DNA of 63,959 nt, the filler included, from Choristocarpus tenellus KU-1152 (taxonomy: Eukaryota; Protista; Phaeophyceae), in the NCBI GenBank assembly GCA_964200185.2. It is 10 parts of 10 records of this genome, joined end to end, with 100 filler letters (N's around TTAATTAATTAA, not from the genome) between each part and the next. Parts side by side here need not be neighbours in the genome. Positions count along the whole stretch, not along the records: positions 4,846 to 18,689 come from CAXNAD020001349.1; 9 more parts are not named here. One strand, written 5' to 3'. Under the pieces are notes generated by a model. That model did no database searches. It saw nothing but the letters and a program-made list of their open reading frames with translations, and had not been told where the DNA came from. The translations under genes were made by a program, and so were the position numbers. Shown in pieces: positions 4,846 through 18,799 of this stretch; the stretch's first letter is position 1; the number at the start of each line of letters is the position of its first letter.

Positions 4846-5346
4846 TTTTGCCATTTAATCATCCCATTTATTCATGCTCGAAGGTGCCTCTGCAGGCTGC
4901 CCCCCCCCCCCCCTGATAGAATCAATAGGTGTATCATGTATTTTCATTTATCAAACAACAACAATAGATGTAGTGTGTATTTTCATATATAAAACAACAG
5001 ATATATCGTGTGTGTTCATTTATCAAATAATAGATGCATCATGTATTTCCATTTAATCCTTAGTATAGTAGTAGTACATAGGTTTTTTAAAAGTTAGGGT
5101 TAGGGTTAGATCAGCAATGGGATGAACAAAAGCCATTGAGTTGTCTACTGTCTGCATACACCCCACTCACTCACACTGCGTGTTAATTTTTTTTATTAAA
5201 AGAAAGAACTGAAATTTAATTGTTCTGAATGACCACCTCTTCTGAATGACCACCTCCTTCTCCTGTATACTGTCATTGCTATGTCATTTCCTTTCATTTC
5301 CGTACACTGCCTAAAATGGCACCATTGCAAATGGGGCATGGTACAG

Positions 5347-6476
5347 CTGGAGTTTGTACAAGATGGATCACAAGAGGGACAAGATTGGAGTGTTTGTGTC
5401 CATTGTGAGCACCAAGATACCCTTCAAGGTGTGCTGTGGTGGAGTGGGTAACATCTACTGGGCACACAGGACAGTGTATTGCGCCTGCGTTATCTAAGAA
5501 ATTTATTTTTATTACTTCTGTTATTATTATTGTTATTATTTTATTGTTATTGTTGCTATTATCATTGTCATTGTTATTGTTATTACTAGTGTTGTTGATC
5601 GTAGATCAGGTCATATCTCAATGGGTTCCTGAGATCTTCAATTTTTTTGCAATACTATCCTTCACGACATTGCAGATACTTCTTTCATAGAGCACTAACC
5701 CTAACCCTAACCCTAACCCCGACCCTGACCCTCTTACAGGGTACAGGTAAGGAGTACATAGGTGATGACATTGAGGAGATTAAGCGATCCGTGAAGCATG
5801 CCCTTCAACAATGCTGCCAGCAACTTAGGGTACACCTTGTGAAGAGAAATGCACTACGAGACCAGCGTGAGAGGAAGAAAGTCCTCACAAAGGTCAGCTG
5901 CCTTGAAAATAAATAAATATACATATATATGTATGTATATATATGTGTGTGTGTTCTGTGTGCAGTGGAGGCGTGTGTTCATTGATTTTTTTTAACTTTT
6001 CTGTTGATTTGTGAAGTACCAGTGATGCTTTTGGTTGGGCTGTTTGTTGTCTGGTAACTTAGGGTTAGGGTAATGGGTGGGAGAGAGTGCATGTGAGAAT
6101 AAAATGTACGGTGTTTGAAAATTTTTAAAGGAAGGAATGTTGACTACCGAGTGCTGGGAGACTTGCCTGTATAGTGTGAGGTGTAGTACCTGTTGTGATG
6201 GTCACATGTCATGACATGTCATGACGTTAGTTGATATTGTGTACAACCTGTTTTGTGTCTTGACCTCTGCCTGCCCTGTTGGGTTTTTTGTTTGAACTGT
6301 TCCTGACTACAAAAACAAACATACCTGGTGGTAGTACATTCCGGATGTGAGTCGATCTGTCTTTGGGATACTCACCGCCATGAGCAAGCGCAGTCTGGAG
6401 GAGGATGTACATGCCAGTGAAGAGGAGGATCTTCCCAAGAGAGCGAAGATATCTTCTGGAAAGGTAGAAGCGAAGG

Positions 6477-6513
<37 letters not shown>

Positions 6514-9500
6514 TATTATTATTACTATTACTATTACTACTGTTGTTGTCAACAAACCTCTTTGCAGTGCTATATCTTTTTCTGGATGTTAAAACTATAG
6601 GAATGATCTAAAATGGTAAGAGCACAAAAATAAGATAGGGTTGATTGCAACTATTAGGTGGTGTTAATGGTGTTAAGTCAGCGGGTGTTTATTTGAATGC
6701 TTGTCTTACTTGAAACGGAATACATTGCACTATTGATACTAATGTATTGATACTAATGTATTTGATACTGATGTATTTGATACTAATATACTTGATACTG
6801 ATGTATTTGATACTATTGTACTTGATACTGATGTATTTGATACTAATGTACTTGATACTGATGTATTTGATACTAATGTATTTGATACTAATGTATTTGA
6901 TACTAATGTACTCGATACTGGTGTATTTGATACTAATGTATTGATACTAATGTACTTGATACTAATGTACTTGATACTGATGTATTTGATACTAATGTAC
7001 TTGAGTAATAACTGTACCCCTAACATCACTGGCTTCAAATGCAAGCTCCTGGTCGAGTTTGCACTCCAACAAGAGTTTCAAGGCAAGACAAAATAGATCT
7101 TTATTTCAGTTGATACAGCATTACTACTTACATTACTACTTACCATACTATCTATATAAATACAAGAAGTACTGTTAGGACCATTTGACTCAGCTCTGCA
7201 TGAGTTGGATGTTGGGCAGTGCGATCACCTCTATCAAGTCCGCAGCCGAAAAACTATCAATGTGTGTGTGCCTAGAGCTACATACTATTGCATGCTCGAA
7301 TATTCTAATGGAGCAATTAATGTCTTTGTATCGGGAATATAGCCAGCCACAATGTTTACCCTCTCGGTAGCAAAGCCAATTTGTTCTGCATAAGATCTCT
7401 TTCCCTTTTCTGACCATCCATATAATGTTGTAACATTATTACTTACTCCCATCTCGTCATATTCAACTTGTGCTCTGCAGCAGATATTATTGTTATTATT
7501 ATTATTATTATTGCTATTATTGTCATTGTTATACTATTATTTGAGCAGTGTTTCGAATGAATATATGAATAAAGCACTAGTGTCAACACATAAAATAAGT
7601 ACTGCGAGTTGCTACCTTTTTTTTTATGTCAACACATAAAACACCTCCAGCACCTCTCTAACGCGCAAAATCTTTAGCTTAGGCAGTTGAAATATTGTCG
7701 TGATGTATGGTTTTTTTACTTTCCACACCTCAGGGGAACAGTTACATATAGACAGTTACATATAGCCATAGCTCTTCATCGTTCAACAAATTAATATATA
7801 TTTTTACCAATACGCACAACCAAGATTGATCTGGACAAGGGGTGTTTTGGACTGACTTGTCCCAGGTGTTTTTGTTGAAAAAAAGAGAAAGTTGTCTTGG
7901 GTGTTTTTGCTGGGTGAGAGGGATAATGAGTGTGAAGTGAGTACGATGGATGCATATTTTTCGTTTTGGATTTTTTTTTTCTTTCCTCAACCCCCCCAAG
8001 AAACTTCTGGTTGTCTATTTCTCTGCTTTCAATGAAAAAGAATCAAACTAATGTGTTTTGTAGTTGTAGTGGTACATGAATGGGTCACTCCGTAATGTCG
8101 TATTTGACCAAATGGGCACAGATGGTGTCCTTGACAAGAGATTTGACAAGAGATCTTACAAGGCAAGTAGAGACAAGTGTTACTACCCTCACCAAAAATA
8201 TTAGAAGCACAACCCTATAAATAGTGTAAGGCAAGAGTTATTTCGGAGTAAATGATCTTTGGTATTGTAAGGTGAATGGATGTTATATGGTCATTGGGTG
8301 TTACAAGGTCAATGGGTGTTATAAGATCAATGGATGTTATAAGGTCAATGGGTGGCCTTAAGGTCATGTAAGTTATGAGGTCAATGGGTGTTACGCAGCA
8401 AATGACTCTGAAAGGTATTTCCCAACAAGACATTTCCCAACAAACTCACCCTGATGTTGTCATGGATATCAGACATTGGAGGAGGCCAAGTATTGCTGAA
8501 CTTTCCAAGGCAACCCGAGAGAGTAGAGTGTCACGATATCCTTAGTCTTAAAAATGTTGCATACAATCACTATGTATACACAGTACTAACACATGTACAA
8601 GAAGGAATGCAGAGCTTACAGCATACAACTTTGACACACAAAAAGGAAACCGGAAACAATCTCATGCAGCACTCGGAAGATTGGTCTTAAGTCACCCTCT
8701 CTACAATCTAATTTCAAATTCCGATCTTTCTAACACGGATAGAAGGTTGGACCTTGTTTGTATCAGTTTCAAACTCACAACTGAGAAAAAGTCACTTCTC
8801 TTACAAGCGCTCTTTTTTTAACATTTTTTTTTAACATTGCCTGCCCTTCCTTGTCAGTCACTCCACCATGTTCAATGCTTCCACTTTGTCTAATACCCCA
8901 TGGTGTGTACAATGTGTTCCAATAGGATCGCATGATTTCATCCCTAGCCAAGAAAGAACTCACTGAGCAGGACCTCGTGTCTGGTCTGGTGCGTGCTGTG
9001 GAGAAGCATGACATGGAGGCGACACATGAGGAGAATAAAGCTGACACCAAGGGGGCTTCTCGGAAGGTGAAAAGGCTTTCCTATCCTTGACCATATATTG
9101 CATGAACCTGTGCATTGTAGGTGCACTTGTACTTGTGTGTGTTGGTGTCAGGTTTCTGGATGCGATTTAATGAGGTAGATGTAGGCAGATGGAATTCTTA
9201 TTCGAATGTTGTACAGATGCTTCCGTTTTTATGATTGGAAAACTCAAAGTGCTGAAGTTGATAGGTTTTTTTTTCTTCAATTGTAAAAAAAGAAAACTAC
9301 ATGAGAAGTTGAAGTTGATGTTGATTTTTGGACAGCCTCAAGGCCAATGTTGAGAGTGATGTGGGTATTCAAAAGATGTGGTATAGTGGCAAGTCATCAC
9401 CAAGACCTTCCTAACGTAACGTACTGCAGCCTAGTCCAGCCATAACATCAACATCAATTTTCTTTTGAATCAAACTATCACTTCATGCTTACCTTCTATA

Positions 9501-11906
9501 AAACATATAGTGTGAACTTTTTTGGATAGGTTGGTAGTTGGTAGTTAGTAGGTACTAGAGTCACCAAAAAAAATTATACCTTTTATGGAGTTGATGAGCT
9601 CAAACCTTTCAGATGATACTACGTGATTACAATTTATTTTACACTGGGTTGCTTAGTAGAGTATGCAAAGAAGAAATCTCGTGGTGTCCTTTGTGATAAA
9701 AGTGTTGATAAAAAAGTAAACCAAACTATAGAGAAGATTCAACTAAGGAATGTGTTCATGGGTGGTCAGTGGTCCCAGTAGAATTTGTCAACACTATATT
9801 CAAGATATTTGTGGCCCGTACTATAACATCAGTATAACTCGTACAACACATTTGTTTTTGGTGAGCATAGTTTTAGTTGCACTGGCTCTCAGTTATCTTG
9901 CAGCAGAGAATCTTAGGTTTCCTAATTGGATAACCTTCTATGTTAATCAATATGCAAATCTAGAGCACTCACGCACTCATCGTCGCCATGTAGCTAAATA
10001 AAAAAATATATTAATAAAATAGTAGAAAAATCACATGCATCCCTGGTGGTACTTACCATTAATAATCAATAGTAGGAAATTGACACCTGGGTGAAGCAGT
10101 TGGTATGTGGTGGGCTTGATAATGTCATTTGGAATCAATCCTCTTGTTGAGGTCCTTTAATTTAATTTGAGTTGGACATTCTTTCATCTTCCAATTCCCA
10201 GAACTTGGGTAGTTGTTACCATTCACTCAAATGTGAATGTTGAGTTGCTTGAACCGCACAATGAACTTTAGCACTACAGAGTGACAGTTACATGATCAGA
10301 GGTCCTGATTGGATGATGCTCAACAGTATGACAATGTCTTCAACAGTCTTCAAGCGTTACAGGGAAAATGGGTTCTGAGGGTTGTCATCAATACCATGGG
10401 ATACAGAGGAAATAGAGAGCAAGCATTTTCATGAACAAAGTAGAGAAAAAACTTTAGGAAACACTTCCATGTGTTAAGAGCTAAGGCTATGAAGAGCATT
10501 TGACCCCTTCTTGTCCTTGATGAGAGTTCTGGCTGGAAAAACAGGTGGGTTGAGATGATGGCCTTATTGAACCAGCGAGCAATAGAATAGTCACGCTTTC
10601 AAGAATTTTAACGAGGGTTTGCCTTAGAATCAGGGAAGTATATAGAATTGCGGCTGGTAAAATGGTATGTGAAAGAAACTGATGCCGGTTTGAAGTACGT
10701 AATATACAGTCATCAGGATCTCTCTCTCTCTATATATATATATATATGTTGGCGTTTTATAACTTGTATCTGGTTGACTAGAATCCTGGACTTGCCTCCA
10801 AAGTCAGCATGCTGCTGTTCTTTTGCTTTAATTTACTTTCCTACCAGAATATTTTGAAAGAACTACTTTGATCCTTAAAGACGAAATGAATACCTTCTAC
10901 TTTTATGTCTCCCTCATTGATTATGTAGAAATCCAGACATGAAGTATGCCTGTTGTGTTTTAAAGGGGGGTTGGGTAGTGCTGGACTTCCCCCTCCCTTT
11001 GGCTTAGTCTCAGTCAGTACTCAGCACCCACCAAAATGTATACACAGGCAGCTTAGGTACCCTGTGAACCAAGAACGAGAAACTATGAAGATAGGAATGC
11101 CACACTGCCCTGTTTGAGGATTAGACCTCTTGAGTGGACTGCTATCAGTAAAACAAACTCATCCACCTCTTACACCACTTGATGAGTGTTATTTGGAGAA
11201 ATTGACTTGATCAAAAAAGGCTGTTGGAGATTAATCAAATCTGAGTGACTAAGATGTGGATCATCATGCATTCAATTCTCAGAAGGGAATCAACCTGTGA
11301 TAAATATTGGATGGTGTCCCCAGTCTATTATTACAAAGACGCCTTTTTGTTCTTAAGCAACACCTCAATACTCAAAATACCCTTAACACATGGTTGTCGG
11401 AGATGTACAGTACAGTACAGTACAACATGCAGGTTGTTATGTCAGCATATCTTAATGCTACTCCTCCGACTACTCTTGAATTCATCAATTGTTGCTGGCA
11501 CTACCACATACTCATAAAATTTCACCTTTTTACAAGCAGTATGTATTCATGTGATCATCACAACCAAACACCTCACATCCATTCTACTCACTACTGGAGA
11601 CTGCACATACTGCAACTATCATGTTCCACGACTTTCAAGTTGGTTGATTGATGTGATCACTTCACACAACAATTGTACAATACTAGTATTGAGTAGTAGT
11701 ATCAAAAATTGTTATAATACTGTTTGTCGTTGCCTGCATACTTACTGTTCATCACTAACTCAATTCTTACCAATTCTTTGCTGCCTTCTGTATAGAACAT
11801 TGCGTTGGTCCCATCATTACACACTGGAGCCGACTTTGGAGCAACTTTGTTCAACTCTCCCACCTTCTCCTTGAAGATCCTTCAGTGTGCTATGCCTAGC
11901 ACGTAG
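5347..11906 (+). CDS. TOP6B: DNA topoisomerase VI subunit B, 3' part (exons 5347-5428, 5740-5892, 6335-6463, 8926-9066, 11796-11906); 5' exons not on this contig
   Basis: Phase-consistent GT-AG exons give WSLYKMDHKRDKIGVFVSIVSTKIPFK|GTGKEYIGDDIEEIKRSVKHALQQCCQQL...RERKKVLTK|YIPDVSRSVFGIL...|DRMISSLAKKELTEQDL...|NIALVP...FNSPTFSLKIL...*. This matches the plant-type Topo VIB transducer domain and C-terminus. Confidence 0.93.
5696..5731 (+). repeat. Short interstitial telomere-type (CCCTAA)n tract; similar (TTAGGG)2-3 tracts near 5094, 6059, 13864, 44561, 45232, 53493
   Basis: The sequence reads ctaaccctaaccctaaccctaaccccgaccctgaccc directly upstream of the acceptor at 5739. Confidence 0.8.
6480..6540 (+). 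repeat. (TTA/TAC)n microsatellite in a TOP6B intron
   Basis: Seen directly in the sequence. Confidence 0.9.
6733..7003 (+). repeat. 15-bp minisatellite (TGATACTRATGTAYT), about 18 units, intronic
   Basis: Direct tandem units. It produces the spurious (YLILM)n and (SNTLV)n ORFs in the ORF track. Confidence 0.92.
8270..8395 (+). repeat. Degenerate 18-bp tandem repeat (AAGGTCAATGGRTGTTAT), about 7 units
   Basis: Seen directly in the sequence. Confidence 0.75.
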
Positions 11907-12910
11907 CAGCAATCCCCTCTGATCAAGATGGCAACCCATCCAATTTACCCCTAATTACTTTGTTGTATTACATAGTTTGAACTGACTGACAATTGTGTAG
12001 TATGTTACAACAAGTTGGTTGTTGCCTTGTTGACGTAGTAGGTGAGAGAACAGATATCCCCCCACAAATGACGATCAATTTAAAACATAAAACGGATTGG
12101 ACATGTGCAATTAATTAATTACACAATTTTTAAGTATATATATTTTTTGTTGGGTACAACTATAGTCACACATTCACAGTGGAGTGACCATGTCTGCACC
12201 AGGCAAACAAGACTTTTTCTTACTGACTTTACTTCAAAACAGTTCTGAAAGGACATGAATGTAAACATGGCACGGCACATTAAGCACACATAAGGCACCA
12301 TACAAACAACATAAAAGAACAATACATGCTGAGATACAACATCACAAATTGACAATCAGACTCAATAACTAAAATCTCGTCAACACATCATCCACCAACC
12401 TCGCGCACCTTCCAGCTATTATTGCATCATTATGATAAACTCTCCTTTCGTACCTAACCCTACCCGGAGGACCAGCATACCTTTTCCCTCCCCAATACCT
12501 CAAATCAAATCTGCTCTGTCAAACCTATGAATATGAATTGAGATCACTTCATTAAACAACCATCCGTGCAAAATCCCAATGAAAATGCAATGACTGCAGG
12601 GATGTAGTTTACACCCCATGGTTGCAGCAAGTTTCATTTGAGAGAGAGGCCCCTCTTCAAGTTTCTTAACCAGCATTGCATACCTGCAGGCATTTAACCC
12701 CCCCCATAATCCCATTTCAAATCGATACACAAAACTAAGTGCTAATCACACGTGCTCTTCACATTAAAACAAGCAATCCATCCACATCTGAGAAAAGAAT
12801 GCTGCTACCTCCTTACAAAGCACAGGTCTTCACTCTCCACACCCAGCAAACAAAAGTCAATCTAGGTGACACAAACGTTACTCAAAGTCAATAAAAATAA
12901 AAGTGGAAAG

Positions 12911-15900
12911 CTAAACATTGCAATCGCAGTTTGCCAAGGCAACACCAAAGGCTGCTAGAGGTGAAAATGGTGCAGTGAAGTCAAGCGCAAAGACATTGTC
13001 CTCTTTTGACCGCCCAAACTGCATGATGAACTGTCCCCGACTGTTATGGAGCATGAAGTTTTTGACAGATTGCTTCTTGATACGATCCTTGTAGAACTCG
13101 AGCACAAAGTATCCCGCCTGTAAGTTAACAGACCAAACAATAAGTACTTTAGTAAATGCCACAGGTTTGATAGCAAGATGTTCTCTCTCTCTCTCTCTCT
13201 GCATTGAGGTAGTTGCATCACTATGTACGTCAATATGGAAGGGAGAAACTCAAGTACCTACAGCAGATCAATTTATAGGTGTGCAGAGGAATTGACAATA
13301 CACAACACAATACCTCCTAAAATAGTGTGGCCAATCACCTGATTCACAAAAGTATCAAACCAGCAACAATATACACACTCACATCATCATCCCACTCAGG
13401 CTTGATACTATGCATACGTGGCACAGGCGTTATGATATTTGCATTCCCATCACCAAAGCTGTTAAGGAGAGAGGCATGGTCCACCACCTCATCATCACTA
13501 TCCGCAACCAGCACCTGACAACCAAAAACCTCAACTGATTAGACAACTGTCTCATCACAGGTACATAGCGGCAATTGAAATGATCTATCTGTGTTTGCAA
13601 TCTCAGAAACTGAATCAAATCAAATCTTGGTGGAGCACCAGCAATGTGAAAAACAGTCAGTGACATGAAAAAAAATTGACGAGAATTGCACAGGTTGCAT
13701 ACATGTGAATAAATCATTGACTAGGTTGAATGAGTATGTATCAATGGTTGCAACTACCATCTTGCTTACTTTTTGATTAGAAAAAAAAATCAACTTCAAC
13801 GAACTGCTGCAATTCACAACAAACACTCAATTTTTTGTACTCCCATCGACTGAAGGTGTTCTAAGGGTTAGGGTTACCATATGGTGCAAACAAACCCTCA
13901 TTCTTAAAGTTGATATGTCAAGTGCTGTCAGTCTACTGCCTTAGCGAGACATGGAAACCTTCTCAACATAAAATCAACATAAAAACAATATTAAATCCCA
14001 CCACACATTAAACAATCAGGTGTATTAAAGCTCTCTTTTTCAAGTCAGCCACTGTATAGGATTGCGCAAGCTTCACATAATTGGAATGCTTTACTTTTGG
14101 TGTCATTACTGGAGCTAAGACCTAAGATGCGAGGTCCTTCCTGGTGACAAGTCAGGGTGACAGATCAGGAAAATTCATCAATACCCTAGCGTATGCCATA
14201 GACAAAAACAAATCAACACCAATATCAGCATTAAATAAATAAGCACAATTCAACAAGTAGACACAATTTCACCTAACAAAAATACAGCACTCTATGGGAA
14301 TGCCTTGTTTGAGCCACTGAATTACAACCAAAAATATTTTAGATGAACCGAAATAGTCCACAGGATCAAGCCTTCATACAACCATGTGGTAGCCAAGCCA
14401 AGCCTATTCACACCTCAAGTTTCCTGGGTCCCTGGAAGTCATCATGGCGAGTGAGGTCGATGCTTACAGCTGCTATCTCCTTTCGCTCAGGTTTGATTGT
14501 GTACTTCTCGGGCCTGTTTAGAGGGATTGTGTTTAGAGGGAGGGAGGTCAGCACTCTCAGTAATTAAAACCTTCCCCAGCATAGTAACCAACAAATCTCT
14601 TAACCACTTTGTAGATGGTCAAATCAGAATATGGGGCATATTCACAGAGGGGCACTTTCCAACAAGGTATGTATCAGTATTGCACCTCTGTATCTGTATC
14701 TGTATCTCTCTCTCTCTGTGTAGTACGTATCCTCTATATCACCAATACAGAAACATCACATGCCACCTCGGTAACAGTAACCCCCCCCCCCCAAAAAAAA
14801 ACCCGGTGCGCACTACAAAAACGCCAACATCACTCCCAAAACCAACATCAACATCAAAAGACTGACAGAAAAGTTAATCAAGCACTTCAAAGCAGACCAC
14901 TGGTCACAACTCAGCACCAAATATCCACATCTACGAAAGAGGTTATTCTAAGTACCACATTGTGAAGACAAGAAATTCAAGCTGAAGGATAAATTGCCAA
15001 ATTGGCACAGCACAATTTAAACTCACAAGGTCTTGTTAGCCTTGAATCCGTTGTCATAGACAATGTATTGTCTACGTTGAGCAACCGCCTTGACCTTGCC
15101 CAATGTGCTTGGCTCCCCGCGCTTGAGATAGGCAGAGTTCATAGAGATAATGAAGCGTCCCTTATCCTTCTTGGCCGTCATGAGCAATCGCATTGTCGGC
15201 TGAATCAACCAATCAAACGGTAAGGGAGAAAACAAGAGTTAGTTATGTACTTCATGCCATGCGCATCACGTGTTGATCAAGAGTGTGAAAGACTCTCCAA
15301 GTCATTGAAACAGTACTTGCCAGATGTACCAATAATACTTACCAATATTCAATCACCCACCAAGAAAAAAAAAAGTTCCATCACTTCCATGGGTAATACA
15401 GTAATTCAACGACAAACTACAAGAACTTAAATGACACAAAAGAGGCCAACATCACCTCAAGGTACAGACAGTACCACACACAGATAGGACATACCCCCAC
15501 AACTCTACAGTCTGAGCACGCCTCTTGCTGGCAACATCTCAAAGATTACAAAAAATAACTGCATGGTTGATGCTAAAGTCTCTCTCTACATGGAGACAAG
15601 AATCAGTAGCAGCTGTCACCTCTTACTCTTAGCAACTTTCATACCTCATAGAAGGCCTGATACATGGTAGTCATCACTCCCTTCTTGCGCTTGACAGTAC
15701 ATTCAATAACACCCGACTGTGCAGGTACCGTTTCATTCAGGAAGGCACGCATAGCAGGCACAGCGAATGGTTCCACGTCCGGAGCCCTGTATACAAAACA
15801 GATTAGAGAAATAAATGTGTGTGTGAGAGCAGTATCCCCATTCACCCTCCTCCCTGTAGGTACATACACACGCAATAAAACTCTCCGGTCGAGTCAATCC

Positions 15901-18421
15901 CAATTCGTACAAATTCCATCTATTGCTTAATGCACCACAGTCTGTCAACATTACACAACCATAAGGCAAACAAGCAGCCGAAAAGATAAGACAGACAGAC
16001 AGACAGACAGACAGGCACATTGTACACCCTTACCCAAGGTTTACTTCCACCGGTGTATTGCGAACATCAGTCGAGGAGCCATCTGATCGATTGTTTCCGA
16101 TTGATTGCAAATTAGGGCTCTCATCCACATCCACTTTTAGAGGAGATAACGGAGAGTCTGCAGGTGGGACACTCTGGGACACTGGACCAGGTGCAACAGC
16201 CCTCTCTGAAGAAAAGTCCTCAGAGGGCGCCTTCGCAAGGTGTCTCTTGGTACTCTTGCTGGTACTCTTGGTAGGCTGTGTAACGGGAGCATCTTCAAAA
16301 ATATCCTCTTCCTCTCCAGCTGTAGCAACAGCGTCTCTTCTCTTTTGTTCCTTTTCAGCTACCTTTCTCCTGCGATTCTGCTCCTCTCTTTCTTTTCTCA
16401 GTACTACCCTCTTCTTTTTCCACAGACGGACAATCCTTTGTGAGCAAACCCTTTCGTGGAATCCCACAATGGCCTCCAAGTACTCATGGTCTCTGCCCCT
16501 GTAATGTTTGCAGCAGGAGGCAATGAGTGTTTTCAAACACGATCTGCAGAACGTACTTTCCAAAACTTACGATGATGCAGCCTGTGGACAATAGCAAACT
16601 CAAACATCTAGTGATTTTTATTTATTTTTTTAAGTATGCTAGACAAATATAGAAAAACATGAGAGTCAATGCTATGGTATGGTATGGTATGGTATGGTAG
16701 ATAAATTTAATAGATACCAATGAATGGTACATTGATACATAATATATTATTATGCCCTCTGACATTTTGCAGTTGTGTCAGGGATTAAGCCAAACCAAAA
16801 TTGCAAGGACATCTGCAAGATAACAGTTTGCGTAAATGTAAAAAAATATCTCTACAAAAACCATGGATACATCAGTGGTACACAAACGACTGTAATATCG
16901 ATCAGTCAACTCAGCACAATGTTGTCAGCAACACATCACCTGACTTCATTTTCCTGGTACACGTACGTATGCATGGGAACAACAGCAAACGGTCATAAAA
17001 ATGCCTCACAAGATGAACATAATTTTACAACAATATGGGCATCAGACCTCTATGTGAATGAATGAAGCATTCAACTATCAAATCAACTTTTCATGAAAAA
17101 AAACATAAAAAGGAGCAGTGTACAGGACACTCAACATGCTTTACAATATCCAACCGCTCAAAAACACTCAACAGTCACTTCCAGAGGCCTCACTCATGAC
17201 ACCATTTCAACAAGTGTCCTCATCTATCATCAACTCAACCTCACAGTTTCGAAGTTAAAACTTCCAGACAAACGATTTTCCCACCCTCTGCAATGACACA
17301 GGATCACCTTTCTTGCATCACATCATCTTACACCTGGAACTACCTATGTCAACTTTCAATTTGGATGGCCTGGTTCAATTTAGAGACAACTGTTATCAAC
17401 AGCCCCACTCAGTCAAAAAGCTTTGAACCGGTAATTGAAATAGTTGTGTCACATCTCCACAAGAAATTGTCTCATTCACCAACTTGAAAAAGTGTATTTT
17501 TTCACCAGAAAAAGATGTTTGATATACCCCTCAAGGTACTTATCACATCTCAAACTTCGTCCATCAAACATACTTTCATTGCCCTGTGAAGGCCCTGTTA
17601 AAAGATATCTAACTACCTATTAGCTTCATTGAGCGTTAACCATGTGTTTAAAATTCGCCCAATAAACTGTGTAACCCTCAAAGTGCAATACCTCCCTCAC
17701 AACAACATGCACCTAACACATTTAGGTGTTACCTCCAGATCCTGATGACCCTACTTAGTGTACAGATATGTATATATCATTCTTACACAGAATCAACTAA
17801 AATAAACTCTTTCCAAGAATCTACGTTGAGTGCAGCACAAGCAGACGCACTTCTCTCTCTTACGTAGTACAAGACACCTCCCTTTTTGAAGACTTCCTGG
17901 ACATTCAAAAAATAATACATAACTTATATACCAGCAGAACTGTCCACACATTGACGCTTCTGAAAACTGTTATGGAACACCCCATCACCCCATCCCATCA
18001 CGCCAAATAGAACAAGACACATACCTTACATCAAGACGACCAAGAACACACATTTCACCACACCCTCTACTCACGGCACAATCACATAACTTGATCAACA
18101 CAGTCCAAAGACAACAATCAAACATTCACCACCTACAAAGCATTCCACTTCATGCTCCATCCCAACCATTTCCTCTCAAGAACATTCCCCAGACAACCAT
18201 CTCATCTCAAACAAAACTAACCTGATGAATATCTTCGAAGCCCCCATTTCATATCCTTCCATCCCTGCTTCAGATGGCATAAGGACTAGCGCCAGTTTCT
18301 GACATACTTGCACACAGTGCACTTGATCAGAAATGTCCATGTTCAGCCAGCCCGGTCCCAGCTTACCGTACCTCCTTACAAATTCACTGTGGAAGAGGTC
18401 CACCCCAACATTCTGGTACAC
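12911..18421 (-). CDS. Myosin-like protein with a C-terminal Tubby domain, 3' part (exons 18421-18222, 16498-16034, 15786-15645, 15199-15027, 14513-14414, 13514-13383, 13117-12911)
   Basis: Seven GT-AG exons, all phase-compatible. The first exon (FHSEFVRRYGKL...D...C...YEMGASKIFIR) resembles the myosin motor C-terminus/converter. It is followed by GRDHEYLE...CSQRIVRLWKKK (IQ-like), a charged helix and an S/P-rich linker. Tubby motifs follow: VIECTVKRKK, LLMTAKK, LGKVKA...YIVYDNG, RKEIAAVS...GPRKLEV, KPEWDDDAGYFVLEF...SVKNF, MQFGR...FALDFTAPFSPLAAFGVAL. Confidence 0.88.
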
Positions 18422-18799
18422 CTGTTGTATGCCAAAAACAAAAATAATTTATTTTTTCTTGTTGGATGGGGTTGTATTCAAAATTAATTCAAAACTGTAA
18501 TATTACCACTGGTTTGTTAGGAAATATATGCAAGCAATGGGCAGGCTTATATGCCACACTCATAGACAACTAAGGCCTGAAAAGATAGAATATACTTGCA
18601 GACATTATCACCAAGTTCTTAAAAAAAGTTGTATCGTGATCAGTATGCCTTCAGTTTCCCTGCACTGTCGGCGGTTACATCGAATATACNNNNNNNNNNN
18701 NNNNNNNNNNNNNNNNNNNNNNNNNNNNNNNNNTTAATTAATTAANNNNNNNNNNNNNNNNNNNNNNNNNNNNNNNNNNNNNNNNNNNNATGTATATAG

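Follow-up and report, generated by a model that had tools for sequence, protein, structure and literature searches.

A candidate unconventional myosin with a Tubby-domain tail on a contig of the brown alga Choristocarpus tenellus

A contig of the brown alga Choristocarpus tenellus KU-1152 seems, on balance, to hold the 3' half of one gene encoding an unconventional myosin with a Tubby-domain (Tub) tail. The contig, CAXNAD020001349.1 (C1349; 13,844 bp), lies in its entirety at positions 4846 to 18689 of the window, which is the whole stretch of 63,959 nucleotides that was analysed; the genome assembly comprises 164 Mb in 27,310 contigs. Two observations carry the argument: an apparently complete Tub domain at the 3' end of the gene, and, upstream of it, an exon resembling the end of a myosin head that leads into a long predicted helix. 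The reading is supported by the existence of myosin-Tub proteins in heterokonts and haptophytes (Sebé-Pedrós et al. 2014, PMC3942036), and the locus is probably a new member of this already catalogued architecture.

Gene model and Tub domain

C1349 is eukaryotic, intron-rich sequence with a guanine-plus-cytosine content of about 40%, and of 43 to 48% across the proposed exons. The gene model consists of seven exons on the minus strand, E1 to E7, running from 18421 to 12911. All of the peptide strings and exon borders were present in the contig sequence, every intron had GT..AG ends, and every acceptor read cag/G or cag/C (a slash marks a splice border). The phases were compatible throughout: E1 ends in AG and E2 starts with G, which gives an Arg codon across the junction; E2 ends in GG and E3 starts with G; E4 ends in TT and E5 starts with G. 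These results confirmed the seven phase-compatible exons on one contig that had been described in the original prediction, and we infer that they are spliced together. The features are as follows.

18631-18689, strand not given: edge of the contig, a dispersed repeat that occurs at least 19 more times in the genome
18421-18222, minus: E1, myosin-like converter end, the last 55 to 66 residues (..HSEFVRRYGKL..GYEMGASKIFI plus the split Arg)
18221-16499, minus: putative intron 1, 1723 bp, GT..AG, the longest intron of the model
16498-16034, minus: E2, putative neck and linker, 154 open codons
16288-16497, minus: single continuous alpha-helix, predicted with AlphaFold2 from a single sequence
16402-16449, minus: degenerate IQ-like motif VCSQRIVRLWKKKRVV, matched by eye
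15786-15645, minus: E3, start of Tub, with an in-frame ATG at 15752-15750; tblastn match to the paralog on contig C14235
15199-15027, minus: E4, Tub profile positions 42-95; basic pair K (15097-15095) and K (15091-15089) in GKVKAV
14513-14414, minus: E5, middle of Tub (..RKEIAAV..QGPRKLE), placed by its position between E4 and E7 and by a GPRK motif
13514-13383, minus: E6, middle of Tub (..HSIKPEWDDD), placed by position and phase
13117-12911, minus: E7, C-terminal Tub strands and helix followed by a TAG stop; Pfam Tub match

The sequence alone leaves room for other 5' edges of E1 and E2, because second acceptors exist for both. Within E1 there was another good acceptor, cctcttccacag/T at 18388-18387, which would place the exon start at 18386, and a phase-compatible ctgcag/A was found upstream of E2. 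The introns of the gene carry microsatellites, namely (CTGT)n, a G/T homopolymer run, (GA)n plus (GATACA)n, and (TACCA)n in the minus-strand reading, at window positions 15990-16020, 14780-14800, 14700-14730, 13185-13205, and 16680-16710.

The Tub domain gave the firmest matches. Searches with Pfam, of the Protein Data Bank (PDB), of the other databases, and of the genome were run on the individual exons rather than on the joined protein. The Pfam Tub profile (PF01167) matched E7 at profile positions 191-255 (E=7.9e-15, 55.7 bits, with a cut-off of 27) and E4 at positions 42-95 (E=1e-5, 25.8 bits). When the genome was scanned in six frames, E7 was recovered at 3.9e-13 (56.1 bits, profile 173/191-255) and E4 at 0.007. 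E7 also matched the solved structures of Tubby, TULP1, and TULP3 at about 1e-7, and E3 matched the first Tub exon of a paralog on C14235 (1339-1461) with a tblastn E value of 2.7e-4 in a small database. Taken individually, E3, E5, and E6 had no Pfam match, and phmmer against the PDB found nothing for them. E5 shares the short GPRK motif with Tub paralogs, while E6 alone had no significant match with Pfam, with phmmer against the PDB, or in the comparison with paralogs. Both exons fit between E4 and E7 by position, phase, and length, and E3 to E7 add up to about 250 residues, against the 256 positions of the Tub profile. We therefore accepted the Tub domain as putatively complete, with E5 and E6 placed by position only; the C-terminal Tubby fold that had been proposed is real and apparently of about full length. 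The Tub exons also displayed good codon bias. An exact-product look-up of the E7-containing open reading frame (ORF) and a metagenome scan with E7 returned nothing.

We then looked at the residues expected to contact lipid. E4 could be aligned to mouse Tubby (1c8z and 1i7e), with GKVKAV over GKLRSN. The pair in GKLRSN is K330/R332 of mouse Tubby, which contacts the phosphatidylinositol 4,5-bisphosphate [PI(4,5)P2] head group in 1i7e. The basic pair previously pointed out in GKVKA thus aligns with these two residues, as K-x-K, the Arg being replaced by Lys. The alignment suggests that the PI(4,5)P2-binding pair of Tubby is retained and that the domain is a putative lipid-binding module.

Including this one, there are about seven Tub loci in the genome. 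At one of them, on the minus strand of contig C2161 (about 5019-5147), the first Tub exon was reported within an open frame of 565 amino acids; this paralog is possibly a TULP whose large N-terminal region is encoded in a single exon.

The junction between E2 and E3 bears on whether the Tub domain belongs to the same gene as the exons upstream. The stop met by the E2 frame, TAA (16032-16030), coincides with the proposed donor, and in E3 an in-frame Met lies two residues ahead of the start of the Tub profile. These features could be read as two neighbouring genes: a short-tailed myosin ending at this TAA after ..VEVNLG, and a separate Tub-only protein starting from the ATG at 15752-15750 (MRAFLNETVP..). 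Tub-only proteins are plausible in this genome, where the roughly six other Tub loci have no myosin nearby. However, the TAA is embedded in a consensus donor, G/GTAAGG, and a pyrimidine-rich cag/G acceptor in the correct phase lies 247 bp downstream. With two genes, moreover, only about 280 bp would remain to hold a 3' untranslated region, a promoter, and a 5' untranslated region, in a genome of 164 Mb whose introns are long; no AATAAA was seen in this gap. We consider two separate genes quite unlikely, and treat E2 and E3 as exons of a single myosin-Tub gene.

A myosin-like converter end and putative neck upstream of Tub

E2 is devoid of any Met codon across its 154 open codons, and an upstream exon is therefore required. 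E1 is the nearest open frame upstream of E2 with coding-like codon usage, canonical splice sites at both ends, and a phase that fits. Among 764 open frames of 50 codons or more, its codon usage ranked in the top 5%; the codon-usage score of E2 fell within the top 5.5% of open frames.

According to several comparisons, E1 resembles the end of a myosin head. The genome's own myosin on contig C8335 has an exon placed by Pfam at Myosin_head positions 606-654, which reads ..AGFPVRMQHGEFVKRYGLL.. A single BLASTP comparison of E1 with the converter exon of this myosin gave E=2e-4, aligning VDLFHSEFVRRYG against VRMQHGEFVKRYG, with HGEFVKRYG in C8335 facing HSEFVRRYG in E1. A PDB search with E1 yielded four weak matches, one of them a myosin (7kch, E=0.63); here residues 12-66 of E1 were aligned to positions 672-721 out of 735 in the myosin, exactly where the motor ends (..GYQIGKTKVFL). 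In this alignment E1 is similar to converters of myosin XI/V type in its second helix and its GYxxGxxK end. At the level of motifs, E1 resembles a converter end, EFxxRY .. YxxGxTKxFxR passing into a predicted lever-arm helix.

We also asked how often such a combination would arise by chance. The composite motif was defined as EFxxRY, 20 to 60 residues, and YxxGx[ST]KxFx in one open frame. It was found once on C1349, against about 0.015 occurrences expected per 164 Mb of second-order Markov sequence. The tail motif alone, searched as a DNA pattern, was at chance level genome-wide (18 matches versus 20 in the control). The idea of a conserved intron position was dropped, as the other genome matches to the tail motif were unconvincing myosin exons.

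The transition from head to lever in myosins follows the pattern KxFFRAGxxAxLE. The E1/E2 junction reads KIFIR/GRDHEYLE, with the same spacing. Downstream of the junction, the first 70 residues of E2 were predicted by AlphaFold2 from a single sequence to form one uninterrupted helix (residues 2-69, 68 residues) with a predicted local distance difference test score (pLDDT) of 91.6. This model supports the neck that had been proposed after the junction: a helix of this kind is as expected for a myosin neck or lever arm. The helix contains the IQ-like motif VCSQRIVRLWKKKRVV, in which the Q, R, and K/R positions of IQxxxRGxxxR are kept; in SQRIVRLWKKK the first hydrophobic residue and the Gly of the IQ motif are missing. 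The IQ-like site is followed by a stretch of about 30 residues in which K/R and E alternate, and which looks like a single alpha-helix (SAH) segment. The remainder of E2 is a roughly 90-residue linker rich in Ser, Thr, and Pro, which may be disordered.

Together, the motif, the match to C8335, and the alignment to 7kch indicate that E1 very probably derives from a myosin converter. The alternative is that E1 is not an exon of this gene, that its likeness to myosin arose by chance, and that a different, unrecognised 5' exon gives E2 its start codon. It agrees with the absence of a statistically significant profile or database match for E1 and with the chance-level frequency of the tail motif. 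The expected frequency of the composite motif, the pairwise match to the paralog converter exon, the fit of phase and splice signals, the myosin-like spacing to YLE over the junction, and the lever-like helix beyond it all argue the other way. On the motif and match statistics, a chance origin is very unlikely and the least likely of the rival explanations.

The contig edge and the evidence against a myosin-Tub gene

Several results weigh against a myosin-Tub gene at this locus, and they concern E1 and E2, intron 1, and the contig upstream. When the exons were checked one by one against the Myosin_head, IQ, and Tub profiles, the three named in the original prediction, Tub was found in E4 and E7 and neither of the other two profiles was found. 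The Pfam scan gave no match for E1, Myosin_head included, and the Pfam IQ profile (PF00612) had no match in E2 even at E<=10. No relative of E1 was recovered by phmmer among 1.84 billion representative proteins, and a feature search of the ESM Atlas with E1 gave no usable match. The single-sequence AlphaFold model of E1 was uninformative (pLDDT 53), and no fold search was based on it. C1349 showed no P-loop, switch, or actin-binding sequence, and nowhere in the genome did Myosin_head and Tub matches fall on one contig. Intron 1 is 3 to 7 times the length of four of the five other introns and about twice that of the 899-bp intron between E5 and E6. If E1 starts at 18421, the GFPxR motif of the converter is absent. 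Finally, a retrotransposon-derived repeat lies 210 to 268 bp upstream of E1.

Other searches gave comparable negatives. A metagenome scan with E1 found nothing, and the sole match of E1 in its own genome was E1 itself; two phmmer matches of E1 were rejected as spurious tandem-repeat proteins. E2 had no Pfam match of any kind, a word search found no relatives for it, and intron 1 contained no ORF with a family match.

E1 covers only about the last 60 positions of the 679-position Myosin_head profile. The last exon of the C8335 myosin (..GVQIGKTKVFFRQ; ..GKTKVFFRQ) is likewise without a Pfam match, and because this exon belongs to a bona fide myosin, the missing match for E1 is not decisive. The proposed myosin head end is carried by its motifs and by weak pairwise alignments, and lacks a Pfam or database relative.

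The GFPxR motif depends on which acceptor is used. With the acceptor at 18422, its position reads NVGVD. The alternative exon start at 18386 lies one base before GAA TTT (EF); GFPxR would then fall in the previous exon, beyond the contig, and use of the acceptor at 18387 could account for the missing motif. Since the sequence alone cannot choose between the acceptors 18422 and 18387, the suggestion of a pseudo-motor is premature: the motif is indeed absent from an exon starting at 18421, and the conclusion drawn from it is weakened by the second acceptor. Should the converter nevertheless start at 18421 and lack GFPxR, the product could be a diverged, maybe non-motile, myosin-derived scaffold, in which the lever helix and the Tubby domain would tether a PI(4,5)P2 membrane to actin or flagellar cargo, possibly in a lineage without recorded myosin-Tub fusions. 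We regard such a scaffold as very doubtful.

The motor itself lies beyond the contig, if it exists as we infer. Upstream of E1, C1349 continues for another 268 bp, in which no exon was found, and the open frame is closed at 18451-18449. The last 58 bp of the contig (18631-18689) are the dispersed repeat listed above, whose other copies are 85 to 98% identical. The copy on contig C6999 (3-830) sits in an open frame for a retrotransposon pol/integrase. The assembly broke within a transposon in the intron upstream of E1. Because the edge repeat has at least 20 copies, the end of C1349 could not be joined to another contig. Contigs C6999 and C21785, both of which start with the edge repeat, contained retrotransposon ORFs and no myosin.

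Across the genome, at least 58 exons, spread over about 27 contigs, matched Myosin_head. The repertoire of myosins is large, and the assembly has broken it up badly. In at least five of the contigs with a myosin head (C3551, C18133, C6668, C13997, and C16251), the sequence breaks off at an edge ahead of the converter, and the missing motor partner of E1 could be among them. Long open frames that had been reported for C9598 and C27220 were rejected, as they were not intact ORFs.

The same contig edge can be read as the trace of a lost motor, with E1 as the remnant of a head that was separated or destroyed by a retrotransposon; the product would be a Tubby-like protein with a neck remnant, or the locus would be a pseudogene. 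Such a relic or headless gene is consistent with the contig breaking inside the retrotransposon-derived repeat, with a converter lacking GFPxR when E1 starts at 18421, with the codon bias of E1 and E2, which is weaker than that of E3, E4, E6, and E7, and with the absence of relatives of E1 and E2 in the protein-database, word, and metagenome searches. By contrast, the exons are all open with intact splice signals, the Tub exons are well codon-biased, transposons in introns are common and usually tolerated, and the acceptor at 18387 removes the GFPxR problem. A relic is unlikely in our assessment, and an interrupted assembly of a myosin-Tub gene is the reading we retain.

Proposed function and relation to known proteins

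If the model holds, E1 would be the end of the motor's converter, and the E1/E2 junction would recreate the ..KIFIR/G....YLE.. passage into the lever-arm helix. E2 would supply a single degenerate IQ site, together with a charged single helix and a disordered linker of about 90 residues, and E3 to E7 would form a complete Tubby barrel keeping a PI(4,5)P2-type basic pair. The motor could then walk on or pull actin while Tub docks at a PI(4,5)P2-rich membrane. As a result, the plasma membrane or vesicles would be tethered to actin or moved along it, much as myosin I and myosin X do through their lipid-binding tails.

Membrane docking by a tail is familiar among myosins. In myosin I and myosin X, a phosphoinositide-binding tail docks the motor on the membrane. 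The protein proposed here would be like the lipid-binding myosins, namely myosin I (TH1/PH), myosin X (PH), and class XXX (PX/PH), in combining a motor, which is inferred here, with a short neck and a phosphoinositide-binding module. Unlike their tails, which have a PH or PX fold, its module is a Tubby barrel. The PX/PH lipid-binding tail of class XXX myosins was described in the survey of Sebé-Pedrós et al. (PMC3942036). In the same survey, the tails of class XXI myosins, which occur in heterokonts and haptophytes and belong to the myosin V-like assembly, include IQ, WW, PX, and Tub (PF01167). Class XXI myosins have IQ after the motor, and some of them end in Tub; the present gene model resembles this layout, with only the converter end of the motor read here. 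Membership of class XXI is defined by motor-domain phylogeny, and the motor of this gene lies beyond the contig.

Compared with other Tubby proteins, the protein is like animal Tubby and TULP3 in having a C-terminal Tub barrel, with the basic pair kept as K-x-K and the C-terminal strands conserved. Unlike these proteins, whose N-terminal region binds intraflagellar transport complex A (IFT-A) or is nuclear, it has a long predicted helix after a myosin-like converter end. In plant F-box Tubby-like proteins, too, Tub is joined to an N-terminal module particular to the lineage; here, however, no F-box is present, and Pfam finds nothing in E1 or E2.

In full-text searches of the literature, the myosin-Tub combination appeared only in the survey of Sebé-Pedrós et al. 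2014 (PMC3942036), and searches for myosin with Tub or tubby showed no functional work. It is not discussed in the main text of Kollmar and Mühlhausen 2017. The suspicion that the architecture might already be listed was borne out, as Tub is among the class XXI myosin tails. Should the model be correct, the locus would provide a further myosin with a Tubby domain as its cargo-binding tail and a testable link of actin motors to PI(4,5)P2 membranes in an alga with a red-lineage plastid. As the architecture is catalogued, the locus without its motor adds little beyond one more incomplete gene model.

Elsewhere on C1349, exons for topoisomerase VI subunit B were found on the plus strand at window positions 5354-5916, with the transducer domain (PF09239) in two ORFs (E=9e-5 and 3.4e-8); this gene runs off the start of the contig. 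A minisatellite at 6739-7096 gives rise to long repetitive ORFs on both strands (ISIKY.. / LILMY..) that are not coding-like. The largest contig of the assembly, C1 (120,357 bp), is AT-rich, has an rps5-like ORF, and probably represents the genome of a red-lineage plastid.

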